Sequence record: OR496884.1
Strand: one strand, 5' to 3'
Length of the DNA: 64,000 nt
The notes beneath the pieces were generated by a model. It was not told the DNA's origin, searched no databases, and saw only the letters and a program-made list of their open reading frames with translations. Below, one piece after another: positions 2,372-55,187 of the stretch (within the stretch, counting starts at the first letter, position 1; the number at the start of each line of letters is the position of its first letter). The position numbers were made by a program, and so were the translations under genes.

Positions 2372-3919
2372 TCAACGTCGATAATTAAAACGGTTACTGT
2401 CGGCATTGTAAGCAAAGATAACAGATCCCATTGTTCCTCTTTCAAAGAACTCTACTTCGTCACCATCCCCTACTTCAATTTCATTATGGATATCCCACCA
2501 ATCCAATTTACCATTTTCTCCAAAATGAGGAGGAATATTGTAATTTGGAAAGAGTTGTTCAATAATCCATTTCCCCCACTCTGTATCACTAACAATATCT
2601 TCAATACAATCTGAAGTATAAAGTCTCAATGCATAATCAAGACTAAATACAATTCGATAGATGTTAGATAAAGTAGGAGGACGTAATAAAACTAAATCGC
2701 CGTTTTCTCTTAATTCTAATTGTTCTTCAGCTACTTCTGTGTTATCAGAATACACTTTGAAATTTAATGGATTACGATGTCTTGTTGTCACTTTACTGTG
2801 ATATTTCAAAACCCATTTTAAAAAAGCTGGATCCCAATTAAACCCATTTAACTGAGTAATATTAAGTAAAATTTGTTCTGGGTCATTTGTGACTGTAATC
2901 AACACTTGTAGTTGAGGGGACAACCAATTAACATTAGGTGGTCTCCAGTTGTCCTGTGATGGCAACGCAACATACCCTGCTGTCTCTATTAACTTGTCAC
3001 CAAATATCAAAGCAGCTAGTTTAGATTCCATAAACCTATTGGTAGGAAGATCCATTTTATTTTGTTCAAATACTTCAGGTAACCATTCTTCTTCCATCAC
3101 TTGTTGATAAACTTGGATGGGATATTGAACTTCCCATTTAACATGTTCATTCCAATAAAAAGAATATGTCCAGCTAACTTCGTATTTCCCAACAAACGCA
3201 CCCTTGCTTACTTTAGCAAAGTTGACTTCCCCGAACTCAATCCCTGTGTTAGCAACTTGTTGGTTAAAGACAAGTGTGTCGTTATTACCAATTATATTAC
3301 TAATGATATCTGTTGGAACAGTAGCAAAATACCTAAACCATTTAATAAAATTAACATCAGGACCTTCTGTATAAATTCCGGCTGCTAATTGCTTTTTATA
3401 AATAGATTGGAAACATTCCAAGATTCTCCAAGGAATAGGATAATGCGTGTTCATATCAAATAGATTGTTTTGATGTGAACTTAAAGCACCGCTCCTGATT
3501 TTATTATGGAATGTCTTTGCAGTTATTCTGTCTTTAAAATACTTGTTTAATGTAATGGTGTATTTTCTATTTTGGTAAATAGGTCTAATCATCGAATTAG
3601 TGATTGGATCATACCACATATGTGGAGTGGTCGGAGTAGATCTTGACTCAGCATCCAGCTCATCATTATAACCAGAATAATCATCGTCTAATTCAACAAA
3701 GATTTTATCATCATAACCAAGATCAGTATCTTTATCGTCACCACGTCGACTGTTATACAAACTACCTAACAACTTACTGACTTCTGCTTCACCATTGAAA
3801 AATACTTTATGATTTTTAGCAATATTGAAATATTCAATGATTGTTGCTAATGATTTTAATATAGCGGGTCTTGTCGAAATACGGTAAACCTCGCTTGCAG
3901 ACACATCTACTTTAAACAT
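2372..3919 (-). CDS. Probable virion structural protein (phiKZ gp99-like, tentative)
   Basis: 515-aa ORF; recalled synteny. Confidence 0.55.
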   Translation of the reverse strand: MFKVDVSASEVYRISTRPAILKSLATIIEYFNIAKNHKVFFNGEAEVSKLLGSLYNSRRGDDKDTDLGYDDKIFVELDDDYSGYNDELDAESRSTPTTPHMWYDPITNSMIRPIYQNRKYTITLNKYFKDRITAKTFHNKIRSGALSSHQNNLFDMNTHYPIPWRILECFQSIYKKQLAAGIYTEGPDVNFIKWFRYFATVPTDIISNIIGNNDTLVFNQQVANTGIEFGEVNFAKVSKGAFVGKYEVSWTYSFYWNEHVKWEVQYPIQVYQQVMEEEWLPEVFEQNKMDLPTNRFMESKLAALIFGDKLIETAGYVALPSQDNWRPPNVNWLSPQLQVLITVTNDPEQILLNITQLNGFNWDPAFLKWVLKYHSKVTTRHRNPLNFKVYSDNTEVAEEQLELRENGDLVLLRPPTLSNIYRIVFSLDYALRLYTSDCIEDIVSDTEWGKWIIEQLFPNYNIPPHFGENGKLDWWDIHNEIEVGDGDEVEFFERGTMGSVIFAYNADSNRFNYRR

Positions 3920-3998: not shown

Positions 3999-4970
3999 TT
4001 ATTCTAAATCAGGATCTAAGTAAACAACAATTTCTTCTTCTATTTCATCTTGTATTAGTTCTTCCGGTTTCTCCTCTGGAGTTAAAGAAGGATTAGGATT
4101 GATTACTTCGTAATCGCTTATATAGTTTTCTCCCTTTCCCTCATCCGGTTTCTCCGATACCTGTTCGCTTTCACCGAGTAACAATTCTTTCGAATCATCG
4201 CTCAATAGATTAGTGTCTTCAGTAGAAGAATAATTAAGATCTGGAATATCGTCTAAGTTGGAAGTGAATCGAACAAACAACGATAAGCCGTTAGGACACT
4301 TAAATACAAGAATATCGGAAAGTGTATCTGTAAATAAATGAGTTACTACACCTTTGGTGATTTGTAAATCCATCAGTGTATAAAACTCGGAACTTAATCT
4401 GTGTTTAATTTGATTTAGTAAATACTGTTTACTTGCTTGTGTAAAACGATTTCCAATGAACGCGTTAGTTTCTAAGTTTCTTAAATCAAAGATTCTTGAA
4501 ACAAAGAAAAGTTTTACCATGGAAAGTCTAAAACAATATTCATGTGGAATATGTGTAATATCCCTCATTAAACCGTCCCCATTCACGCCAGAATCACTTC
4601 TTGTGTAATAGAGCGGTATTTCCCCATAATAACCGTAGGAATCGTTTAAAATAGGAAGAGAGATGTATTTCTGATCTTGGGTTGGATAAAGCGGTTCGGC
4701 GTTGTAATAATCAATTCCTTTTTCTAAACCAAGATTATATTTATCAGACACTATTTGATAAAAATCATCCATGGTTGTTCCAACAGGAATTTCAATTACT
4801 GGGCTAAACCCAAAGAGTAGTTTAATATCCAACTTTTGTAACACCGTGCTAACAAGCATTCCATTAGCGCGTGTTTCAATGATGCTTCTTAAATTACTCT
4901 TTGCATAGATCCGAATAAACTCATGACCAGAACTTAGTTTTTGAATAACTTGTTCTTTAAAGGTCTGCAT
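3999..4970 (-). CDS. Hypothetical (probable virion) protein with acidic C-terminal tail
   Basis: 323-aa ORF, E/D-rich last ~80 aa. Confidence 0.7.
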   Translation of the reverse strand: MQTFKEQVIQKLSSGHEFIRIYAKSNLRSIIETRANGMLVSTVLQKLDIKLLFGFSPVIEIPVGTTMDDFYQIVSDKYNLGLEKGIDYYNAEPLYPTQDQKYISLPILNDSYGYYGEIPLYYTRSDSGVNGDGLMRDITHIPHEYCFRLSMVKLFFVSRIFDLRNLETNAFIGNRFTQASKQYLLNQIKHRLSSEFYTLMDLQITKGVVTHLFTDTLSDILVFKCPNGLSLFVRFTSNLDDIPDLNYSSTEDTNLLSDDSKELLLGESEQVSEKPDEGKGENYISDYEVINPNPSLTPEEKPEELIQDEIEEEIVVYLDPDLE

Positions 4971-4973
4971 TCG

Positions 4974-5864
4974 TTATCCCTTAAATTCGGATTCTTTTGT
5001 TTCAGGTTTAACACTGTTGGCGTTGTTAGAGATAGCGTTAAGCATACCAGTGATTTTAGTTCGGATAGATCCAAGCAGTTTAGTTCCTTTTGTTTCTTCT
5101 TTAGCTGTGTCCACTGCTTCCTTCTGCTCAGCCTTAGCAGCTTGCTGGATTTCACTGGTTGCATCCTCGCTAACACTTGGACCTTTACGCATTTTCTCAG
5201 CAGACTGTTCTGCTGCTTTAACAGACTGTTCCAATACGGTAGTGACTGCTTTAGAAGCTTCTGCTGCTTTCTTACGCATCTCTGTATAGACAGCACCAAG
5301 TTGTCCTACTGTTTTAGCGTTACTAACTCGTGATGCCGCTGCTTTACAATTTTCAATAGCTGTTCCAAGAGCCGGATACTTTTTCATTAAGTTTTCAAGT
5401 TCGACACTTTCACCAATCCCTTTAAAGTAGGTCAACGGATTAGTTAACTTACTTTCTTCTTTAATGGGAGCTTCCATGTCCATCTTGCTCAAAGACTCAA
5501 GAGATTCAACTGCTTTCTTGTCAGCCTCTTCAGCAGCTTTCTTACCGTCACCAAAGAAATACTCTTTGATCTTTTTAAGTGTTTCGATAATTGCTTTATA
5601 AGCTGCTTCACCAGAACTTTTGAGTGTATCTACCCAGCTTTCAGAACCTTGAAAACCATGAAGTTTTAAAGTAGTGATACTGTAGGCTTCTGTTCCTGAC
5701 ATAGCAGCAAAGTCAAGTTGTTCCTTACTCAACATACTTCCATATCCGTCAAGGATTTCGACAACATGGTCAATGTCTTCATTAGAAGCTTTTGCAGGAT
5801 TAACAGTTACGTCATCCTCAGGAAACTCAGTCAGTTCATCACTGAGAATATTAGATTCAATCAT
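4974..5864 (-). CDS. Internal head protein with acidic propeptide (phiKZ gp93-97-type paralog family)
   Basis: SGTE/A and QGSE/SW motifs ending an acidic N-terminus; Ala/Lys-rich helical body. Confidence 0.7.
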   Translation of the reverse strand: MIESNILSDELTEFPEDDVTVNPAKASNEDIDHVVEILDGYGSMLSKEQLDFAAMSGTEAYSITTLKLHGFQGSESWVDTLKSSGEAAYKAIIETLKKIKEYFFGDGKKAAEEADKKAVESLESLSKMDMEAPIKEESKLTNPLTYFKGIGESVELENLMKKYPALGTAIENCKAAASRVSNAKTVGQLGAVYTEMRKKAAEASKAVTTVLEQSVKAAEQSAEKMRKGPSVSEDATSEIQQAAKAEQKEAVDTAKEETKGTKLLGSIRTKITGMLNAISNNANSVKPETKESEFKG

Positions 5865-14165: not shown

Positions 14166-15254
14166 TTATCGCCCACCAAACAGTTTCAGAAGAGAAGCAA
14201 GATCCAAAGAGGTATCTTTCTTAGCAGTTGCAGTGATATTACGGATGGTGTAGCTTTCCGGTAAATTGCTGCCGCTGTTCCAGAATGTTATTAAACCTTC
14301 ACCATCATTAACAATGATGATAGTATTGGCAAGTACCGCTTTACGAATACGAGGCATGCCAGATTTATCAAAACGGAAACCGTTTTCACTTTCAATCTGT
14401 TTGGCTGTTTCAGAAGAAAGGATAATGGTATTAGCCATGGTATTCATGGACATAACACCGCTTGCAAGCGCAGCTGCACGGTTACGACTTTGACGGTCTT
14501 GCGCTTCTTCGTAATAACCGGAAAGATCATTGGTCCGAATATTAAATTCCCGCTTAATGATATCAGTGCCTTTGAGAAACTCTGGGCGAGTTAATTCATC
14601 AGCACGATACATCATCACACGACCAAACCAACCGTCTTCTGGACGAGCGGCTTCAAACATCACTTTAAGATCGTTTGAGGTCATGGGAACAGGAACTTCT
14701 TTAAAGTTCAGTGGGAAGGAAACTTGGGTTTGACCAATTTGGGTTTGAGCAGTTACTGTACGACCAACAGCCAAAGCCGCGTTAACAGTAATCTCACCTA
14801 ACTCTTTCCCGCCAAAGGTAGCACTCTTTCCATTAGTAGGTGCTGCTTCACAACCACTGATCAATTGCTTTTTAGCCAGTGCTTCAACGCCTTGCAAAGA
14901 AAGAAACCCGCCAGTGCGGCGAGGTTGGATCGAATCAACAAGACTGCTTATTTTGATACCGTCTATTTCACCTTGCATGGCAATGTGAGTTAACGCATCT
15001 TTAATATCACGAAGCATCGTAACAGTTAGCAAATCCTGCATGTAATCCATGTGGATAAGATCACGTTCAATAGCAACCATTGGTGCTACAGTAACTCGAC
15101 CTGCTGATTGAGAAACGGAGAGGGTGTTAAATGCATTGTATGCTTTACCAGCTACTCCAATGGCTTTTTCTGCCGCATTAACGACTTCACCAGTTTTACC
15201 AGCCGTTTTGGCAAGCTGCACCAGGAACCCGCCAAAGTTGATGACACTCAGCAT
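14166..15254 (-). CDS. Inner-body/head protein (phiKZ gp89-like)
   Basis: ATG 15254 with AAGGAG RBS; QGVE/A and SGCE/A motifs; divergent from the baseplate pair. Confidence 0.6.
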   Translation of the reverse strand: MLSVINFGGFLVQLAKTAGKTGEVVNAAEKAIGVAGKAYNAFNTLSVSQSAGRVTVAPMVAIERDLIHMDYMQDLLTVTMLRDIKDALTHIAMQGEIDGIKISSLVDSIQPRRTGGFLSLQGVEALAKKQLISGCEAAPTNGKSATFGGKELGEITVNAALAVGRTVTAQTQIGQTQVSFPLNFKEVPVPMTSNDLKVMFEAARPEDGWFGRVMMYRADELTRPEFLKGTDIIKREFNIRTNDLSGYYEEAQDRQSRNRAAALASGVMSMNTMANTIILSSETAKQIESENGFRFDKSGMPRIRKAVLANTIIIVNDGEGLITFWNSGSNLPESYTIRNITATAKKDTSLDLASLLKLFGGR

Positions 15255-15278
15255 CTTTGACTCCTTAAAGGTATAAAT

Positions 15279-16352
15279 ATGAATGAACAAGAAAATGATT
15301 TTACAAACTATTCGGGAGAGACCCTAGAAAAAAGAAAAGAGGTTTTTGACACCGCATTAAGGGATCAAGGTTCTCCAGGTTATACGTCACCATTAATAAA
15401 CTCTTTGAGGGGTTTTAGAATACTGGGGACGGGTCCGGCGATGATGCCGCTCTCGGATAACACCATAGGATTGAGCTTTGTAACAAGACCACAATTGAAT
15501 TTAACAGATGATAACGTTAGTCGGTCTGAAAAGCTTTGTAGCCTTTATGGATGCGGACAATATAGCATCGGTGCTTATATTAGAGGAATGTTGGATGAAA
15601 GGTGGGCGGCTGCAAATCAACCCGTTGCTTTGAACAATAAGATTCCATTTATTCCTTGTTTAACAAGTTACTTAAAAACAAGTACCGGTTTTGGTGATTT
15701 GCAAATGCAAATCCAAACTTCTGAACCAGGTATACGTGACCAAGTTTATCAACGGATCGCAAGTAAATTGGAAGAAAATGGTTTGTACACAATGTCACAA
15801 ACCTATTTTAATCCGAAGCCTGGAGTTATACCAGCTTTATTCCAAACTTGGGAAGATTACATTTCCGAAGTAACATCCGGGGATCGTAATCTAAGCCCTC
15901 GTGATTTTTATTTGTTTAGTAACCGTATTGATTTTGATTGCAGAATCTATCACTTGATTATGAACAAAGATGCGGAATACTTAGAACACATTTTTGCAAC
16001 GGTTCAATCTATTCCAAATACTTATCAAGCAGGTGCATTGGCTAACATTGATAATACTCAAAATTCAATGAGAGCTGAAGGTCAAGATGACTTTAGTGTC
16101 CAGTTTAGTTCCGTCGGAATGCGGTTTAATGAGCTTGGTTTAATACAATCGTTTAATGAACACAGTTTTGCTTACAACCCTAATCTTCGTCCAGAACGGC
16201 GCGCGGGATATTATCGGATGTTAAAAACATCGGAATACCAAGAATACGGTTACGGCGCTTATCCATTACTATTACCGATGGCTGATGATAGACGCAACCC
16301 AAATGGTGTTGGGCGATACGGTATAAAGTTGACCTGGTGGGTAGAACGTTAA
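15279..16352 (+). CDS. Baseplate/tail structural protein (phiKZ gp88-like)
   Basis: 357-aa plus-strand ORF upstream of the large wedge gene; recalled synteny. Confidence 0.55.
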   Translation: MNEQENDFTNYSGETLEKRKEVFDTALRDQGSPGYTSPLINSLRGFRILGTGPAMMPLSDNTIGLSFVTRPQLNLTDDNVSRSEKLCSLYGCGQYSIGAYIRGMLDERWAAANQPVALNNKIPFIPCLTSYLKTSTGFGDLQMQIQTSEPGIRDQVYQRIASKLEENGLYTMSQTYFNPKPGVIPALFQTWEDYISEVTSGDRNLSPRDFYLFSNRIDFDCRIYHLIMNKDAEYLEHIFATVQSIPNTYQAGALANIDNTQNSMRAEGQDDFSVQFSSVGMRFNELGLIQSFNEHSFAYNPNLRPERRAGYYRMLKTSEYQEYGYGAYPLLLPMADDRRNPNGVGRYGIKLTWWVER

Positions 16353-16403
16353 ATAACACGACATACTAACATTAAGGTTACTATTAAAATTTATGGAGTT
16401 GTT

Positions 16404-19322
16404 ATGGACTTTTCAGTTCTTGAAAAATATGCAAATAACCCTAGCCGGATTATTCCAATTATTTTTAATGGAATAGAGCAAGCGGCTGATGTCGGGGGAG
16501 GACAAATTAATGCAACAGGTCATCCTTTTTCTTATGCTATTGATTTGATCATTGGTACTAATTACAGTTTCATTAGTAGGCTAGGTGATAGCACAGCAAA
16601 AACTTATCAATCTCACGCTCGTAATTTGCAAGACTTATCTAAAGTAATGAGTGATGAAGATTGGGTGGGTGTCTTTTCAGAACCAAGCGGTGAAACCATT
16701 CGTTGGATCATTGGAATTGAGACATTAGAAAAAATAGCAAAAGACTTTATTGAACAAGATGGCGCTTTAGTTAACACCTATAAGAAATTGGAACTTCCGC
16801 CTGATACCCAGTTTTTTGTAGCCGGGATCCCCTTCCTGCTTGAAAATCCAGTTGAAATTAGGATTATGGAACATGGGGGTATTCAAGTCGTTTACGACAG
16901 TAGTTACAACTCCCCATTTAAACCGTTAACAGATAACTCCCCAGATCGAGAGATTATTCAAATTAATGGTTCTAGCAAACTTGCAATACACCTGCCTGTA
17001 AGACAACTGGAAATTAAAGAATATCCTAGTCGTCCGGTTAACGTGACTTCAGGGTATCGTGAAACAATTACATTTAATGATAAGTTGTTTGGGATACGGG
17101 CATTTATAACTCCGGATGGTTCTAACACTCGTCAAGAACTTTCTATTGTTTATAACAATGAAATTTTTGATCCGAATCAACCAACACTTGTCATCGACAT
17201 GATTGACGATAATAATTTTCAAGCAAGTATTCCAACCGTTTACCTGCAAAATGAAACTGCATTAGGTCGTTTGACTATTTTGACATACACGACTAGAGGT
17301 GCACTTTATCAAGATCTATCAACGCTAAGAACTCAAGAACATACAGTTGCATATTACGACTATCGTAATGAAAAGGGTAAGCTTGGAACATATTCCGAAG
17401 AATTGCGTAATGTTAATGAAGTCTTGGTGGACAGTCTTACACCTATCACTGGCGGTAAGAACGGATCAAGCTTTGAAGAAATAAAGAACATGGTGATATA
17501 CGGTTATCGTAGACGCCAGATACCTATTTCTAATAGTGATTTCAGTCAAGCGTTGTCACGTGCTGGATTTGATAATGCAAAATCAATTGACACCGTAAGT
17601 CGTCGAATTTTTAGAACAACTAAAAATCTTCCTATTCAGGAAAATAAGTTGTTTGAAGGAGATGACGTCGCGCGTTTTAATAGCTCTATCGGAACTTACA
17701 CAGGTAGTACGTTAACTTCTATCGAGGAACTGGTTGGTACCGGTAACGCAATCGACAACGGTAGACGTATCACAATCTTGCGTGGTTGTGTTTATGACAT
17801 CACCGAACAAACTCCAAGGCTGGTTCCGTTATACGAAATTAATGCACTAAAGAACGCCAGCAATCAAGTTAAAATAGATACCATGGGTAATCACTCAATG
17901 GTGTACCTTCCTTTCATGTATGTTATTGATATCACTAATGACAGGGCAGAGGTAAGATGTTATCGCGTAGCCAAACCAGAAATACGGTATCAAACATTCC
18001 GTTATGAAAATGCAACACTTGGAATGCAAGTTTCTGTTGGGTCCATTAATATTGTTTCTGATAATGATGGTTACACTATTTCTTTGGAAACTAAATCAAC
18101 AGATACCTATAAGCAGTTGGCTAATGAACTTGTTGGTATTCAGTTAAGTTTTAGTGTGGAAGGTTCTACAGCACCAGCAGTGATGAAAGGGACACTATTG
18201 GGTAAAACGGCTGAAGGCGAACGTGTTTTCCAGTTCAAGATACCGAGTCGATTTGATGTTGATGCGCTTGACACAATAGATCTTAAAAACTTTAATCAAT
18301 TTGGAAGACCTCAAGACACTGTTCGGGTGAATTTGGAAGAGACAGCTAATTTCATATTTACTTACAGTGGTGATGGATTAGCTTTAAAATCCGCTACAGA
18401 TTTTAAAATTGATCAGACGCTTTTTAATAATATCACAATTGCTATCATTGAAACAGAATACAAGTTGACTTTTGGTCAAACGTTAAACAGTCTGTATACT
18501 CGTATTCGACCGATGGTAGGTGAAGCACAGTACGAGAAGTATTTACAAGGTGTTCCTGAAACCTATCTCGATGACACGTTTGTTTACGAAAATGGTAAAC
18601 TAAAGATCGTTGACGGAAAGGCAGTAATTGAACATCGCAAAGGTGAAGTCGTTTATAATACGGATGGTTCAATCAGATGGAAGCATTTGGCAGGAACTAC
18701 TGTTTATGACGAAAACGGTGAACCAGTATTGCTTAAACCTCGTGAACTTAAATACCATTGGGATTTCATTGGTTTTGATTTCAACTATCTGTTAAGCGAA
18801 GATGACTATGACGGTGATTATGTAACGTTAGTAGAAGACTTCTTTGCCGAACAGGTTGATAGCGAAGTTATTGAGTTTAATAAGAAAACACTTGATGAAA
18901 CAAAGATTGTTTTCAAACCTCGATCCACTATGGGGTTCACACAAGTTATTCTTAATGAAAACATTACCAAAACAATTCGAACTGATATTCGTTTAGCAGT
19001 GACCTATTACTTGACAACAGAAGGTATGAGTAACGAAGATTTGAAACAGTCTTTGAAAAATAATACTCATAAAGTTTCCAATGAACAACTTTCAAAAGGG
19101 ACTTTCTCTGTTAGTGAGTTGACTAACCAATTAAGAACTGGTGACGCCGTAGCTGTTAAAGTTACTGCAACAGCAGGGATTGATAATGTTGATGTTATCA
19201 CTAACATCGATGAAACAAACGGTTTTTCAATTCGTAAAGTATTGGATCAAACATCTGACCGTCTGTTAACAATTAAAGAGGATATAGAGATTACTTTTAA
19301 AGCTCACATTCAAAATAAATAA
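16404..19322 (+). CDS. Baseplate wedge protein (T4 gp6 / baseplate J-like; phiKZ gp87-like)
   Basis: 972 aa; ITGGKNGSSFEEIK...RRQIPISNSDF resembles the GG.D.ES.EE.R...AVT..DY baseplate-J signature. Confidence 0.7.
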   Translation: MDFSVLEKYANNPSRIIPIIFNGIEQAADVGGGQINATGHPFSYAIDLIIGTNYSFISRLGDSTAKTYQSHARNLQDLSKVMSDEDWVGVFSEPSGETIRWIIGIETLEKIAKDFIEQDGALVNTYKKLELPPDTQFFVAGIPFLLENPVEIRIMEHGGIQVVYDSSYNSPFKPLTDNSPDREIIQINGSSKLAIHLPVRQLEIKEYPSRPVNVTSGYRETITFNDKLFGIRAFITPDGSNTRQELSIVYNNEIFDPNQPTLVIDMIDDNNFQASIPTVYLQNETALGRLTILTYTTRGALYQDLSTLRTQEHTVAYYDYRNEKGKLGTYSEELRNVNEVLVDSLTPITGGKNGSSFEEIKNMVIYGYRRRQIPISNSDFSQALSRAGFDNAKSIDTVSRRIFRTTKNLPIQENKLFEGDDVARFNSSIGTYTGSTLTSIEELVGTGNAIDNGRRITILRGCVYDITEQTPRLVPLYEINALKNASNQVKIDTMGNHSMVYLPFMYVIDITNDRAEVRCYRVAKPEIRYQTFRYENATLGMQVSVGSINIVSDNDGYTISLETKSTDTYKQLANELVGIQLSFSVEGSTAPAVMKGTLLGKTAEGERVFQFKIPSRFDVDALDTIDLKNFNQFGRPQDTVRVNLEETANFIFTYSGDGLALKSATDFKIDQTLFNNITIAIIETEYKLTFGQTLNSLYTRIRPMVGEAQYEKYLQGVPETYLDDTFVYENGKLKIVDGKAVIEHRKGEVVYNTDGSIRWKHLAGTTVYDENGEPVLLKPRELKYHWDFIGFDFNYLLSEDDYDGDYVTLVEDFFAEQVDSEVIEFNKKTLDETKIVFKPRSTMGFTQVILNENITKTIRTDIRLAVTYYLTTEGMSNEDLKQSLKNNTHKVSNEQLSKGTFSVSELTNQLRTGDAVAVKVTATAGIDNVDVITNIDETNGFSIRKVLDQTSDRLLTIKEDIEITFKAHIQNK

Positions 19323-50179: not shown

Positions 50180-50624
50180 TACTTCTTCCTTCTCTTATTT
50201 TTTCAAAAGTCTTTCCATTCAATATTACTGAATGCGAAAGATCGTAATAAGTGTCTTTTTCTAATACCCGCCCACTAATAGCAAGTGTGAACATTTTCTT
50301 TCCCACTTCATAACCAGGTGCACGAGCTTTAACTTCTGCTGCGTCAAAACACTCTAATAAAAAACTTTGTAGGTTACTCTGGATCTCTTGCAGAAACCCA
50401 TCTATTTGTTTGTCATCTTGATGTTTAGCAACAACATATTGAAAACTTTGGATATTTCTAAAAATAATAGATTGATCTTTGCGGTTAGCAAACCAGTACG
50501 CTATTAACCTATCTATTTTTACAACAGGTTCATCAACCCATCCTAGCGTATCCATTGTTCCGACTATTCCAGCCATAACAACTCCAAAAAAAAAATAAAT
50601 AAGTGAAATAATCACCTGACCCAT
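50172..50624 (-). CDS. Conserved hypothetical protein (possibly gp25-like sheath initiator fold)
   Basis: True start probably ATG of MAGIVGT; fold guess from size and pattern only. Confidence 0.5.
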   Translation of the reverse strand: MGQVIISLIYFFFGVVMAGIVGTMDTLGWVDEPVVKIDRLIAYWFANRKDQSIIFRNIQSFQYVVAKHQDDKQIDGFLQEIQSNLQSFLLECFDAAEVKARAPGYEVGKKMFTLAISGRVLEKDTYYDLSHSVILNGKTFEKIREGRSNV

Positions 50625-50642
50625 TTGGGTCAGGTGTTTATT

Positions 50643-50780
50643 TTACGCTTCGTTAAAACGAGCCATAGGACGACGTTGTTTTTGCTTTTTGTTTTGTTTC
50701 CACTCTTTGTAGTAATGGAAAGCCAAAGAACCAAAAACAACCAGACCAATAGAACCAAAGAAAACGTTAGCAATTGTCAT
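50643..50780 (-). CDS. 45-aa single-TM membrane peptide (not in ORF track)
   Basis: AGGAAA RBS; MTIANVFFGSIGLVVFGSLAFHYYKEWKQNKKQKQRRPMARFNEA. Confidence 0.7.
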   Translation of the reverse strand: MTIANVFFGSIGLVVFGSLAFHYYKEWKQNKKQKQRRPMARFNEA

Positions 50781-50791
50781 GTTATTTCCTT

Positions 50792-51268
50792 TTATTTAAT
50801 TTTAAAAACATTACTGATACGCTCAAAATCCATCAGGATGTCTTTTAAAGATTCAGCGGATGGACACAGAAACGGGTCCAGACCATACGAAAAAACTTCT
50901 AGCAACTTGATATCAAGCCAGGGAATGAGCTGATCAATTGTGGTGTATGGTGGTTCGATGTGTCTTAAACATTTCCCACTATCGTATAACACCCAGGCTA
51001 CTGCGAGAACATCAGCTATTCCAATAATAACTTTTTTGCGGTCCTTATGACCTTGAGCAAAGTTTTTTGAATCAAGAACATTACAAAAATAGATCATTAC
51101 CGCGGAACTATAAACATCTAACTTCCGAGAGCGTTTTGCAACCAATTGATGACGCTGAGCCATTGCCAGTTCATCAGTCATGTTTAACTTAACCAGGGCG
51201 TTATTTCCGGTAATTACCGCTAGATTTTCAAAGAAAACAGCACCCGGGGTTTTATCAACGTTGGTCAT
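50792..51268 (-). CDS. Hypothetical protein behind early promoter motif
   Basis: 158 aa, AAGGAG RBS. Confidence 0.7.
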   Translation of the reverse strand: MTNVDKTPGAVFFENLAVITGNNALVKLNMTDELAMAQRHQLVAKRSRKLDVYSSAVMIYFCNVLDSKNFAQGHKDRKKVIIGIADVLAVAWVLYDSGKCLRHIEPPYTTIDQLIPWLDIKLLEVFSYGLDPFLCPSAESLKDILMDFERISNVFKIK

Positions 51269-51316
51269 TTCTCTCTCCTTACTAAATTGGTTAGAACATT
51301 GTTGTTCTTTACACTT

Positions 51317-51331
51317 TAGTAATATAGGTTT
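51317..51331 (-). promoter_or_regulatory. Putative early promoter motif
   Basis: Minus strand AAACCTATATTACTA, containing the TATATTAC early motif described for phiKZ. Confidence 0.7.
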
Positions 51332-51346
51332 GAAATGTAATGGGTA

Positions 51347-51826
51347 TTAAACCTTACATTTATTCCATGTCTCTCGACATAGTTTAATTGTTTTAGGGAA
51401 CAGATCTTTTTCCCACATCTTATTAAGAATCCGATAACCTATTTCGGTTGATGATCCGTAGTTAAGAGAAATGTGTAATTTTAATTCTGGGAAACTGTGT
51501 TCAAATCCAAGCTCTTGAAGTTCTTTAAAACGTCGCTGTATCGCATCAGATTCAAGAACTAATGCCAATGCGTAGTAATTCCCATTTGGATTACCCATTT
51601 TCTCAAAACCGATTACATTGGCAGTATAGACGGTATTATTAATTCCAGGATCAATCTCAGGATCACGTTTGTCATACATCAATGTCGCATGTATTTCATT
51701 TCCTGAAAGATTAACCATTTCCCATTTTTCTTCTTCCGGGAATTCATTAAGGAATTTGCTAACAGCAACATAAATATCAGAAATTGATTTAACGTCAACA
51801 CACAGTGACGAGTACCCCATTCCCAT
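51347..51826 (-). CDS. 2H phosphoesterase, Acb1 (T4 57B)-like
   Basis: Two HxT/S motifs (IHATLMY, LHISLNY), second preceded by GFEHSFPE; ~159 aa. Confidence 0.75.
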   Translation of the reverse strand: MGMGYSSLCVDVKSISDIYVAVSKFLNEFPEEEKWEMVNLSGNEIHATLMYDKRDPEIDPGINNTVYTANVIGFEKMGNPNGNYYALALVLESDAIQRRFKELQELGFEHSFPELKLHISLNYGSSTEIGYRILNKMWEKDLFPKTIKLCRETWNKCKV

Positions 51827-52158
51827 TATGCTTTCTCCGTATCGTATACGTTTCTTTCTTTGCGGTCTTCTATTCTAGTGTTTAATGCAAAGAGTGCTGA
51901 CTTCAAACCATCCAAAGCAATATCATTGTGCTGACATTTAAATTGGTTTTGATTGAATTTATCTAATCGATAAATACACATCGCAATGACAGCTTCCAAT
52001 GTAACGCCGTTGACACCAATTACCGGAGAACCATTTTGAAAACATATTTTACCCAATTCATTTTGTTGATTATCTAAAGCAACAAAATCGTTAATTGTCC
52101 CAGAGCGAATAATTGTACATATATCATCAGTGTGGATAATTTCAGTTGTCAATTCCAT
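51826..52158 (-). CDS. Tad1-like nucleotide-signal sponge protein
   Basis: FQNG...GVNG...E......RL..F....F.C..N..AL....A...L..RIEDRKERNV pattern; ORF-track start 52206 lies in a hairpin, ATG 52158 preferred. Confidence 0.65.
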   Translation of the reverse strand: MELTTEIIHTDDICTIIRSGTINDFVALDNQQNELGKICFQNGSPVIGVNGVTLEAVIAMCIYRLDKFNQNQFKCQHNDIALDGLKSALFALNTRIEDRKERNVYDTEKA

Positions 52159-52191
52159 TTTAAAATCCAAATAAAAAATAGTTGTAAGTAA

Positions 52192-52220
52192 AGAGGTAAC
52201 TACCAATGGTAGTTACCTCT
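52192..52220. terminator. Hairpin after 52226-52900
   Basis: 13-bp stem agaggtaactacc/ggtagttacctct. Confidence 0.7.
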
Positions 52221-52225
52221 CGCTA

Positions 52226-52900
52226 TTAATCCCCGCTTTCAGCTTCTTCTAATGCTTTTCTTCGTTGTTCCAATACTTCTAGAGCTTCCTCGTTGTTTAG
52301 ACGATTTTCACCCATGATGTTAGTTGGATCAAACAGTTCATTTGCAAGATGCAAATTAGAAGCTTGCCACGTTCTAAAAATATCAATCCTTTCTTTAACA
52401 GAAAGTCTAACAAAGTCATCACGATTAGTTAGGTATTGTGTCCGTTCAATAATCCCGTCATCGTTCAGACGATTAAGTCCATCTACTGCTTTGTTATAAA
52501 AATAGTTATCACGACCAAGTCCAGTACAGTAACTAGAAAACTCGTCATCATAACCACTAATATGACCGGTCTCATAAAGTCCCATCATCATGGGGTTGGC
52601 CATAATGTAGTTTCTCATGAACCCAACAGCTTGTTGTTGATATTTCAGATCACTGAGATACCCGATTTCAAAACGACCTACGTAGTAGCCGTCTTTACCA
52701 ACTCGGTTAGAAAATTCCCACATACGAGAGTTCATGAATTTCTCGTGAGACTTCTTAACACTATCAATAGCACCTGATAGCCAACCTGTCAGATTACTAA
52801 ACTGGTTATAAATTCCCCCCATGTAACTATTGTAAGAAGCGGCAGCGTTTTCTGACATAGCGCCACCACAACCATACATAAAAGCGCTGGTTGCATTCAC
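52226..52900 (-). CDS. Conserved core protein following nvRNAP beta-prime (phiKZ gp59/Imp3 position, tentative)
   Basis: 224 aa, GTG start 4 nt after the exon-3 stop; synteny only. Confidence 0.5.
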   Translation of the reverse strand: MNATSAFMYGCGGAMSENAAASYNSYMGGIYNQFSNLTGWLSGAIDSVKKSHEKFMNSRMWEFSNRVGKDGYYVGRFEIGYLSDLKYQQQAVGFMRNYIMANPMMMGLYETGHISGYDDEFSSYCTGLGRDNYFYNKAVDGLNRLNDDGIIERTQYLTNRDDFVRLSVKERIDIFRTWQASNLHLANELFDPTNIMGENRLNNEEALEVLEQRRKALEEAESGD

Positions 52901-52903
52901 TTA

Positions 52904-55187
52904 CTAATCCTCTTGTATGGGTTCATCCAATAACAATGCGTTGTAATTCAATAAATTTGTTTTTGTTGCTGTTGCAAAACGACTTGTCTTAAACAGGCGG
53001 TTTGGATCCAACATTTGATGATGGCCAAAAGAACTATACGCCTGAATTCGACTAATCAGATCTGGCAACATAATGCAATACATTTGGTCCTAACACATTG
53101 TAACGCTTCACAGCGGCTTTAGTTGTTCGCTAAACAACATTCCGATACTTTCATACCGGTTGAGATCATATCTTCAAAACTACATCCTTGTAGTTTGCCT
53201 ACCGTTAACCCAAGCTTTTGGGTACATGATCGTTGAACACATCGTAGATTTATATCTAGGACTTCGTTGCTGATTGCCCATTATAATTTCTAACCCTTAG
53301 CACCCAATCTTCCAAGACTAGGTTATTAAGCATAGGTCATTTCTTTGTTTCTTTCTACCTTTCGGTAACATTCACGCTCACCCTCTCAGGTCACGTTGTA
53401 GTACAAAGAACTTTAGGGGTTTCCAGCAGTTAGATAGGTTTAACGACGGCAACCAAATTTTACCGTCAAAGTCTGCCATATACATTGTCCACTTAAGTGG
53501 TTTTCACCGATTGCGCTAATTCGGCATTCCGATAGTCTCCTACCGGTTGAGAGTACATCTTTCAGGTTCTAACAAAAGTTAGCCCGTCCCCACGTTCGGA
53601 TCGCGACATGATCCACTTACTCGTTGAGCACACTTCCTATCCATTCTCACGAATGTACTTAGAAGCTTCGCTGCTGATTGACTCTATTCAATTCTTTTTA
53701 AACCACACCATATACCGTTTCCAGTTCCGTTTTGGTGAATTGACCTAACAAGTTCGTTCCAGCAATTAGAGGGGTTTTACTTCGGCACAGAGTCTACCGA
53801 ATTCTTTTACAACTGTTATTGGAATACGGATTGATTTATCTTCAACGTCCCTATTAAACTTCAAAAAGAACGTTCGAGCTGAAAGATATTGGATAGAAGG
53901 ATTTCGACCAGCGATCGCCATTGCATACTGGTTTGTCTCTATCCAATCAAAGAACTCCTCAATTACTGGATGACGGTAATTGGCAGCGCTCCGAATGATT
54001 TCTTTTGCTTTTAATGGACTATAACCTTTTACTCGGTACAACCAGTTTGACAAATGTTTATCATAACACGTTATACCGTACAGCCAAGGCACTACAATTG
54101 TATCAGATCGACAAACACCAGATTCACCAGTAATGATAGAACGACCCGTCATAGGAAGTTTACCAGCACCAGCATGATAACGGATCATTCCTTTCTTCTT
54201 AAACACCACCGCTTCCATCACCTTATACATCACGGCTCGGAGTTTGGTAAAATGTTTACCCATTAATGTTCCGTTTTCTTCCGAACGAATGTCGTAAGCA
54301 GGAAACATATCAGCAATGGTAAAAAAGAATTTATCCAGGTCTGTCTTTTCTTTATTGATGTAACGATCACGTTGGTCGCTTTCAATAATGGTCGTTATTT
54401 TATTTGGTATTGGGAAATATTGAGAAACAGCAAGATGTTTAAACTTGTTCCAGAATCGGGAATAATGTTCCCTGGAACGCTCGTCTACATCTAGAATACC
54501 ACAAAGATCTTGGTTAACAGATGCATCAATAATTAAATCGATGTTTTCAATAAATTCGTTATAACCAAATTCAAGACCTAGTGTATCTCTAAACGCTTCT
54601 ATTTTACATGCTATTTTAAACGCCGTGTTGGTAGGATCTCTAAACCGTTTTTCTTTTCTAAGATCACTGTTAATCCAATATTCCACCAGATTAACTTTTG
54701 GTGTTTTGGTATTTAAGTTATCAAAGAAAACTTTACATATAGATGGATTAAGAAACCCTGCTACTTTATCAGGTGTTTTTAGCCATACTTTTGTTTCTAT
54801 TTTATCAACTAATGGCTTAGTGACAGAGTGTCCGCAATCTTCACAAACAACATTCATATCCAAATAAATGTTGGATCGATACTTTTTACATTCGCATGAT
54901 GCTACTGTATCAAAACAGTTTCCTTCATACTCCGTTCTAAGCAAGCTGATAATACGGTCTCGATCTTCTTCCTTATTAAAATCGAAATCGTTTAAATAAA
55001 TAGGTGTGTTGACAGAACAATTGTGTCTGGCATCATAGTCATCAAAATCCGGATACAAAGCTTTATAAAAACTTTGATCGTCCTTTGGAATTTTAAAACC
55101 AGTTTCTTTAATGATTTTATTAAAGATAGCCGACGGCAACAGGTTTTCTACTTCGTAAGGTTTTAAGATTTCCGCTAAAGTAGGCAC
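52904..55187 (-). CDS. nvRNAP catalytic beta-prime N-terminal subunit (phiKZ gp55-like), spliced join(55187..53796, 53476..53462, 53089..52904), 530 aa
   Basis: Zn site CECKK...CEDCG, RNPSI; splicing restores KEFG-ADFDG-DQMYC with the DFDGD Mg-binding motif. Confidence 0.93.
53090..53461 (-). mobile_element. Group I intron 2 (372 nt, IA-like, no ORF)
   Basis: Exon GACGGU pairs IGS GCCGUC with U-G at the splice site; P10 GACCAAAU/AUUUGGUU; P AACUGCUGGAAA, Q AAUCAGCAAC, P7 GAUCA/UGAUC; ends in G. Confidence 0.93.
53462..53476 (-). other. 15-nt micro-exon GCAGACTTTGACGGT encoding ADFDG
   Basis: Reads in frame between two group I introns and completes the RNAP active-site motif. Confidence 0.93.
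53477..53795 (-). mobile_element. Group I intron 1 (319 nt, IA-like, no ORF)
   Basis: Exon UUCGGU pairs IGS GCCGAA with U-G at the splice site; P10 GCAGA/UCUGU; P AAUUGCUGGAA, Q AAUCAGCAGC, P7 GAGUA/UACUC; ends in G. Confidence 0.93.

Follow-up and report, generated by a model that had tools for sequence, protein, structure and literature searches.

Acb1 nucleases and Tad1 sponges are the closest described relatives of the two adjacent genes considered here, which lie on the minus strand at 51347-52158 of a 64,000-nucleotide stretch of sequence record OR496884.1 (hereafter the window). Acb1 has an HxT/HxT tetrad with which it cleaves 3′ of adenosine independently of metal; it leaves cGG and 3′2′-cGAMP uncut, and its authors suggested the cAAA of type III CRISPR as a possible further target (PMC9117128). 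For the sponge CbTad1, mutation of F82, N92, R109 and R113 abolishes binding of glycocyclic ADP-ribose (gcADPR) and of 2′3′-cGAMP, while R90 and T97 (R88 and T95 in CmTad1) hold the phosphates of cAAA and cAAG and build the hexamer, their mutation abolishing cA3 binding (PMC10680739). An earlier note, made from the sequence alone, had read the two genes as a sponge-plus-nuclease pair. The analysis reported here supports this, and we estimate a probability of about 0.8, based on sequence comparisons and structural models, that they form a co-expressed counter-defence cassette directed at diffusible nucleotide signals, consisting of a Tad1-family sponge and an Acb1-family nuclease.

Jumbo phages that form a nucleus withstand DNA-targeting defences and are candidate agents for phage therapy, among other uses for the control of Aeromonas in aquaculture; defences that rely on small-molecule signalling still stop them. 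The cAAA-activated effector NucC of the cyclic-oligonucleotide-based anti-phage signalling system (CBASS) is a documented threat to such phages: phiKZ has a Tad1, yet its nlp1 mutant dies by cAAA-NucC CBASS, and the cAAA sponge Acb2 rescues it. A survey of 406 phages encoding chimallin and PhuZ found anti-Thoeris and anti-CBASS genes among the commonest anti-defence genes and gave the same rationale as is given here (PMC12625630), and a 2026 review treats phiKZ Tad1 as the only anti-defence protein described in jumbo phages.

Results

A pair of overlapping genes in Aeromonas phage AerS_266

Positions 50600-53200 of the window match Aeromonas phage AerS_266, a Chaoshanvirus of A. salmonicida with a genome of 243,674 bp (OR496884.1), at 100% identity. 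Since the record annotates chimallin nearby, along with RNA polymerase subunits of the phiKZ type and a divergent polymerase of family B, AerS_266 is a nucleus-forming jumbo phage. The upstream gene of the pair, assigned to the Tad1 sponge family by homology and fold model, occupies 51826..52158 on the minus strand (110 residues), and the downstream gene, assigned to the Acb1 family of 2H phosphodiesterases by Pfam, profile and fold model, occupies 51347..51826 on the same strand (159 residues), stop codons included. As noted earlier, the two open reading frames (ORFs) overlap by TAATG (51824..51828, minus strand): the TAA that ends the Tad1-like gene (51828-51826) and the ATG that opens the Acb1-like gene (51826-51824) have one base in common, a direct reading of the sequence. 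A Shine-Dalgarno-like GGAG (51835..51838, minus strand) lies 8 nt 5′ of the Acb1 ATG, within the 3′ end of the Tad1 gene, and this motif and the overlap would be expected to couple translation of the two genes.

Between AerS_266 and Aeromonas phage ZPAH34 the ratio of non-synonymous to synonymous substitution rates (dN/dS) is 0.055 for the Tad1-like and 0.085 for the Acb1-like gene, values that point to strong purifying selection on both. Because of these low ratios and of homologues in the same order in 18 isolates (below), both ORFs are real genes and not chance ORFs. In GenBank the Acb1-like gene is already labelled "Anti-CBASS nuclease" and the Tad1-like gene "Anti-Thoeris immune evasion protein"; the paper describing AerS_266 makes no mention of either. 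In a search of sequencing runs, no RNA run contained the region, and small shares of it turned up in two metagenome runs only.

The 159-residue protein resembles Acb1

The 159-residue protein matches the Pfam family PF23474 (Acb1) with 46.9 bits (E 3.1e-12; cut-off 27) and no other Pfam family at E ≤ 10, and PF23474 is precomputed on all 56 of its homologues. A profile built from 43 homologues and compared with the PDB gave significant matches to Acb1 entries only, namely those from FBB1 (7t26, E 1.1e-7) and BCSR5 (9q2g, 5e-6; 9q2y, 2.4e-4); a literature search found no paper on the BCSR5 phosphodiesterase. An AlphaFold (AF2) model of the protein has a predicted local distance difference test score (pLDDT) of 90.7, and in comparisons of this model with Foldseek and VIA-align both solved phage Acb1 proteins rank first, with VIA-align Z scores of 14.1 (9q2y), 13.8 (9q2g), 12.9 (7t26) and 12.5 (7t27), ahead of a plant cyclic phosphodiesterase (CPDase; 9.7) and LigT (9.0). 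The proposed Acb1-like assignment is thus supported by sequence and model alike; a best match to LigT-type enzymes, which had been named in advance as speaking against it, was not observed.

The two HxT/S motifs pointed out in the earlier note are present as H46-A-T48 (51683..51691, minus strand) and H118-I-S120 (51467..51475, minus strand), with H46, T48, H118 and S120 invariant in 43 family members. G4 and Y5 are also invariant, E152 is found in at least 90% of the 43 members, and W154 is near-invariant in an 11-member alignment. H118-I-S120 aligns with the PHITLSY segment of FBB1 Acb1, with Ser where FBB1 and T4 Acb1 carry Thr; Ser in place of the second Thr is allowed in 2H enzymes, and the protein is predicted to have a complete catalytic tetrad. 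Within the clade the conserved aromatic residues are Y5, F112, W154 and the one at position 85, which is Y in AerS_266 but W in most relatives.

The 110-residue protein resembles Tad1

A phmmer search of the PDB with the 110-residue protein found CmTad1 (8kbb, E 5.1e-7), phiKZ gp184 (8y6v_I, 1.4e-5) and CbTad1 (7uav, 1.9e-4), and tblastn gave E 3e-8 to the founding Tad1 from SBSphiJ7. A Pfam scan at E ≤ 10 returned no match, PF24729 included; PF24729 is precomputed on the three closest homologues. These three close homologues were all that a word-based protein search found, more distant Tad1 relatives emerging only through alignment-based searches, and no related loci were found in IMG/VR with the single protein as query. 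The AF2 model, built on 45 sequences (pLDDT 90.8), has a four-stranded β-sheet (residues 5-10, 15-19, 24-28 and 34-40) followed by two helices (54-68 and 76-101). All 20 of the PDB matches found by Foldseek at E ≤ 0.001 are Tad1, with TM scores (TMq) of 0.74-0.85 among the matches listed, and the next match has an E value of 0.12. Both sequence matches to solved Tad1 proteins and the fold therefore agree with the sponge assignment made earlier, and the motifs on which that assignment had drawn are found at F40-Q-N-G43 and G48-V-N-G51 (FQNG..GVNG) and at R95-IEDRKERNV-104.

Residue correspondences were taken from ungapped alignments to CmTad1 and CbTad1, after the chain-to-paper numbering of CmTad1 had been checked on 11 named residues, all 11 of which agreed. 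The four CbTad1 residues required for gcADPR and 2′3′-cGAMP binding, F82, N92, R109 and R113, correspond to F68, N78, R95 and R99, so that 4/4 are present, and the equivalents of N78, R95 and R99 are kept in nearly all of the 91 Tad1 sequences tabulated. Helices α1-α2 (51862..51957, minus strand), which carry these residues, also carry the replacements Q76, D83, F90 and A91. Q76 and D83 stand in place of the Arg and Thr of the trinucleotide site, and F90-A91 in place of the hexamer-interface Met-Trp (M102 and W103 in CmTad1); altogether, of the 11 CmTad1 residues at the trinucleotide site and the hexamer interface, 8 are not conserved, the Trp among them. The features so lost mark the dual-site hexameric form of Tad1 and not the family as first described. 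Because both phosphate ligands and the Met-Trp pair are missing, AerS_266 Tad1 is probably not a sponge for cAAA or cAAG, and it may not form the canonical hexamer. Of the ligands that the earlier note had proposed, gcADPR is consistent with the retained pocket, and "some cyclic oligonucleotides" would narrow, given Q76 and D83, probably to dinucleotides at most.

The replacements are not peculiar to AerS_266. The Arg, the Thr and the Trp (preceded by Met, His or Leu) are kept in 51 of 80 IMG/VR ORFs and in SBSphiJ7 Tad1; Arg and Thr are absent from all 10 standalone homologues of nucleus-forming phages, from phiKZ gp184 and from those on 8 of 8 IMG/VR contigs longer than 170 kb. A quick, weakly resolved tree places 28 of the 32 Tad1 sequences without Arg and Thr in one clade (SH-aLRT 95), within which the Acb1-linked Tad1 genes form a subclade (SH-aLRT 94). 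Since the larger clade, including phiKZ gp184, shares the loss, and Acb1 is absent from phiKZ, the trinucleotide site appears to have been lost as a lineage trait before the linkage to Acb1 arose. The death of the phiKZ nlp1 mutant by NucC fits a lost trinucleotide site. One 41.6 kb IMG/VR contig (L033) encodes two canonical Tad1 paralogues, at 2830-3225 and 4807-5193, approximately 1.6 kb apart.

The gene pair is fixed in one clade of nucleus-forming phages

Comparison of two tblastn tables, one for Tad1-like and one for Acb1-like genes, identified 18 isolates in which a Tad1-like gene lies directly upstream of an Acb1-like gene on the same strand with a gap of at most 24 nt. They comprise the Aeromonas phages AerS_266, ZPAH34, CF8, AVP1, AhC3_1, pAEv1810, ACP1, PS1, PS2, LAh10, D3, D6 and D9, together with Pseudomonas phage OBP, Serratia phages Yubaba and Sureiya, Klebsiella phage N1M2 and Shewanella phage SXP01. 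The pair is therefore found across at least five genera (Chaoshanvirus, Ferozepurvirus, Ludhianavirus, Petsuvirus and Nimduovirus), plus SXP01. The 1-nt overlap recurs in CF8 and ZPAH34, and in the other relatives the genes are 1-24 nt apart, or approximately 3-9 nt by the gene calls of the records. Every locus that was opened has a constant order: chimallin, the β′ subunit of the non-virion RNA polymerase (nvRNAP), a 224-residue protein, Tad1, Acb1, a small variable ORF, a virion protein, a 274-residue protein and SbcD.

The slot has variants. Edwardsiella phage pEt-SU encodes Acb1 but not Tad1 there, and Tad1 is missing from the rest of its genome too, which points to recent loss of the sponge within Petsuvirus, where OBP and Yubaba keep both genes. 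In phiKZ, homologues of the flanking genes are present as gp59 (the 224-residue protein) and gp65 (SbcD), the slot being filled by gp60-gp64; its Tad1 is encoded at another locus as a capsid-packaged protein of 230 residues, and phiKZ lacks Acb1. The genes gp60-gp64 (positions 14670-17101 of the phiKZ locus, L105) encode five small proteins with no relation to either Tad1 or Acb1. The first two, gp60 and gp61 (111 and 154 residues), were considered as diverged counterparts of Tad1 and Acb1 and rejected, with no Pfam match and hhalign probabilities of 0.2% and 1.5%.

In nucleus-forming phages, the slot looks like an accessory region of variable content. Because only OBP, among 80 Tad1 loci from IMG/VR, has an adjacent Acb1, the linkage is specific to one clade of nucleus-forming phages and not general to Tad1. 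The pair had been described as inserted between core nucleus genes, which is only partly apt. Its slot, which varies across the wider family, does lie between genes whose conservation reaches to phiKZ; within its own multi-genus clade, however, the cassette is old, stable and syntenic, and no recent insertion.

Tad1-derived domains fused to Acb1

A single ORF takes up this slot in Kosakonia phage Kc263 (245 residues) and in Erwinia phage AH04 (241 residues), and in it a degenerate Tad1-derived N-terminal domain is in frame with Acb1 (positions 2719-3456 of the Kc263 locus, L010, and 2725-3450 of the AH04 locus, L012). Eight more distinct fused proteins of 224-245 residues were found in public data (P0029, P0038, P0039, P0042-P0044, P0047 and P0048). 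The C-terminal 150 residues of the fused proteins are Acb1; a profile built from the 72-92 residues at their N-terminus matches that of Tad1 with 96.6% probability (E 6e-10), and the Tad1 profile matches the N-terminal part of the Kc263 ORF at E 2.9e-5. Because the FQxG loop and the equivalent of R95 have been lost, the fused Tad1-derived domain is probably no longer a gcADPR sponge. A second Tad1 was sought in Kc263, where a profile search of the genome found the fused ORF only and tblastn listed no Kosakonia record. The fusions show that both genes have been inherited and expressed as one unit, and are the only hint of a physical association between Tad1 and Acb1.

Start codon of the Tad1-like gene and flanking features

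GenBank starts the Tad1-like gene at a TTG at 52206 (52206-52204), giving a protein of 126 residues (coding sequence 113826-114206 of OR496884.1). This TTG, in the region 52159-52225, is part of the loop of a hairpin with a 13-bp stem (52192..52220, minus strand) that begins 5 nt past the stop codon of the upstream gene. The stem is kept in ZPAH34 through compensatory paired changes, and in CF8 a different sequence still folds as a hairpin. Frame-breaking indels separate the hairpin from the ATG in CF8, and the homologues in other genera start at or near the Met encoded by the ATG at 52158. Since the TTG is in a conserved hairpin loop, the CF8 indels break the extended frame and the homologues start where they do, sequence comparison identifies the ATG at 52158 as the true start and the GenBank TTG as wrong; the gene boundary used in the earlier note was the right one. 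The ZPAH34 record contains the same over-extension, from an ATG in the hairpin loop. The hairpin itself, which was not among the listings of a simple terminator scan, is probably a terminator-like or transcript-boundary element.

The motif TATATTAC, an early promoter motif in phiKZ and one from which we draw no claim here, occurs once near the pair, at 51319-51326; the window as a whole shows no excess of it (3 occurrences against 3.3 expected). Directly downstream of the Acb1-like gene is a 158-residue ORF (50792-51268, minus strand) with no Pfam or PHROG family and no useful match in the Atlas; the same slot holds ORFs of 47-80 residues in CF8, AVP1 and OBP. By its position the 158-residue ORF is a candidate for a further counter-defence gene. 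Between a 150-residue gene and a small membrane-like ORF of 45 residues lies a perfect GC-rich hairpin of 10 bp (50613-50636), which has a T-rich tail on either strand and looks like a bidirectional terminator.

Discussion

Proposed function

The phage nucleus does not shield a phage from diffusible nucleotide signals, and the cassette would cover these. A homo-oligomer of the Tad1-like protein, at least a dimer, would bury 1″-3′ or 1″-2′ gcADPR, the Thoeris signal, in the pocket formed by F68, N78, R95 and R99, and this sequestration would keep ThsA-type effectors off. The same pocket may hold some cyclic dinucleotides, including 2′-5′-linked ones that Acb1 leaves uncut. The Acb1-like enzyme would destroy the 3′-5′-linked di- and trinucleotides of CBASS and possibly the cAAA of type III CRISPR. 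As the sponge appears to have lost its trinucleotide ligands and the hexamer Trp, Acb1 plausibly supplies the missing coverage of cAAA and cAAG. While the families, folds, residues, synteny and selection are as observed above, we infer the ligands, the oligomeric state, the division of labour and the timing of expression. The cassette proposed in the earlier note accordingly stands in its families, folds and predicted coupling, its ligands and activities being assigned by homology and conserved residues.

A wider reading is that the Tad1 lineage of nucleus-forming phages is a single-site, probably dimeric sponge for gcADPR and dinucleotides, which in one clade has become one functional unit with Acb1, the sponge dealing with ADPR-type and 2′-5′ signals and the nuclease with 3′-5′ di- and trinucleotides. 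We offer this only tentatively and rate its chances as well short of even. Coupling and recurrent fusion could also mean that sponge and nuclease form a physical complex.

Alternative explanations

Several observations weigh against the counter-defence reading. On the nuclease side, the second motif is HxS and not HxT; identity between the Acb1 clade of AerS_266 and the solved Acb1 proteins is only 15-18%; an insertion of 15-20 residues at approximately residues 28-45 is modelled with lower confidence; and for FBB1 Y12, W74, F107 and W147 no one-to-one equivalents were fixed, the paper and PDB-chain numbering differing by one. The 2H fold with HxT/S motifs, which is common to LigT, CPDase and Usb1, all of which match the model at Z 8-10, would suit a housekeeping 2H enzyme, such as a LigT-like 2′-5′ RNA ligase or 2′,3′-cyclic phosphodiesterase in RNA or tRNA repair, with an unrelated neighbour. 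PHROG 755, to which the protein belongs, has the older label "RNA ligase", and several GenBank homologues are so named. We regard a housekeeping role as quite unlikely, given that Acb1 is the one Pfam family matched, above its curated cut-off; that the PDB profile search found Acb1 only, with a drop in Z from the four Acb1 structures to the next match; and that the gene is constantly linked, and sometimes fused, to one for a Tad1-type protein.

On the sponge side, the equivalents of F82 vary among close relatives (L, C, Q and Y), and about one quarter of sponge homologues tested (19/84) inhibited none of seven systems (PMC12393519), so that a Tad1 fold is no guarantee of gcADPR binding; nor does linkage to Acb1 by itself explain the loss of the trinucleotide site. 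The 110-residue protein might instead hold another signal (His-ADPR, N7-cADPR, cyclic mononucleotides or an Aeromonas signal) or act as a partner or scaffold of Acb1. Sponge families shift specificity widely, and the fused domain of the Kc263 and AH04 type, without its R95 equivalent, shows that the fold can persist without the canonical pocket. We nevertheless consider either role for the AerS_266 protein unlikely, as all four residues proven by mutagenesis to serve gcADPR and 2′3′-cGAMP binding are present in it, three of them near-universal in the family. That one or both genes are decaying remnants without current function, as the lost Tad1 of pEt-SU and the degenerate domain of the fused forms might suggest, is highly improbable: the frames are intact, dN/dS is low for both, the catalytic and pocket residues are invariant across genera, and both models are of high confidence. 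A working cassette against nucleotide signals remains the reading that we prefer.

Significance

Both proteins extend families that were already known, a reading that the public record gives as well, so the new points are increments, and current concepts are unchanged by the finding. Literature searches found no description of a fixed, coupled Tad1-Acb1 unit or of a single-site Tad1 lineage in jumbo phages, nor of Tad1-remnant::Acb1 fusions, the corrected start codon or a sponge-nuclease complex. Conserved in at least five further genera, the Tad1-Acb1 unit offers an experimental entry point and could help to predict which Thoeris or CBASS hosts a phage overcomes. A natural single-site Tad1 would be suited to studying how sponge specificity evolves, and the fused forms provide a natural test of a sponge and a nuclease working together.

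Comparison with known systems

The Acb1-like protein has the same compact 2H fold as T4 gp57B and the FBB1 (7T26/7T27) and BCSR5 (9Q2G/9Q2Y) enzymes, with 136 of 137 residues of 7T26 aligned. Like them it is phage-encoded, has approximately 150 residues and carries two His-x-Thr/Ser motifs. Its family has an invariant aromatic residue near the N-terminus (Y5) and a conserved E152-x-W154 in the C-terminal segment, the part that forms the lid of FBB1 Acb1. The protein differs in its low identity, its HxS second motif and the extra segment at residues ~28-45, and in that its gene belongs to a nucleus-forming jumbo phage and is coupled directly to one for Tad1.

With the Tad1 proteins of SBSphiJ7, CbTad1 (7UAV/7UAW/8KBE-H) and CmTad1 (8KBB-D), the AerS_266 protein shares the fold (TM 0.74-0.85), the FQxG...G.NG loop and the F/N/R/R pocket. 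In contrast to these it has 110 residues rather than 122-142, carries the R-to-Q and T-to-D replacements, and is probably not a hexameric dual-site sponge. A related case from a nucleus-forming phage is phiKZ gp184 (8Y6V chain I), which falls in the same Tad1 subclade of the quick tree and shows the same loss of Arg, Thr and Trp. However, gp184 has 230 residues, including an N-terminal capsid-anchoring part, and is packaged and injected (bioRxiv 10.1101/2025.11.23.690004), from a different locus of a phage without Acb1, whereas the AerS_266 protein is a bare domain that would be made post-infection and coupled to acb1. The anti-defence islands of T4 and lambda (AntiDefenseFinder survey, PMC11724313) likewise place genes against different defences side by side; unlike those islands, the AerS_266 pair is apparently translationally coupled, keeps a fixed order across genera and is fused in some lineages.

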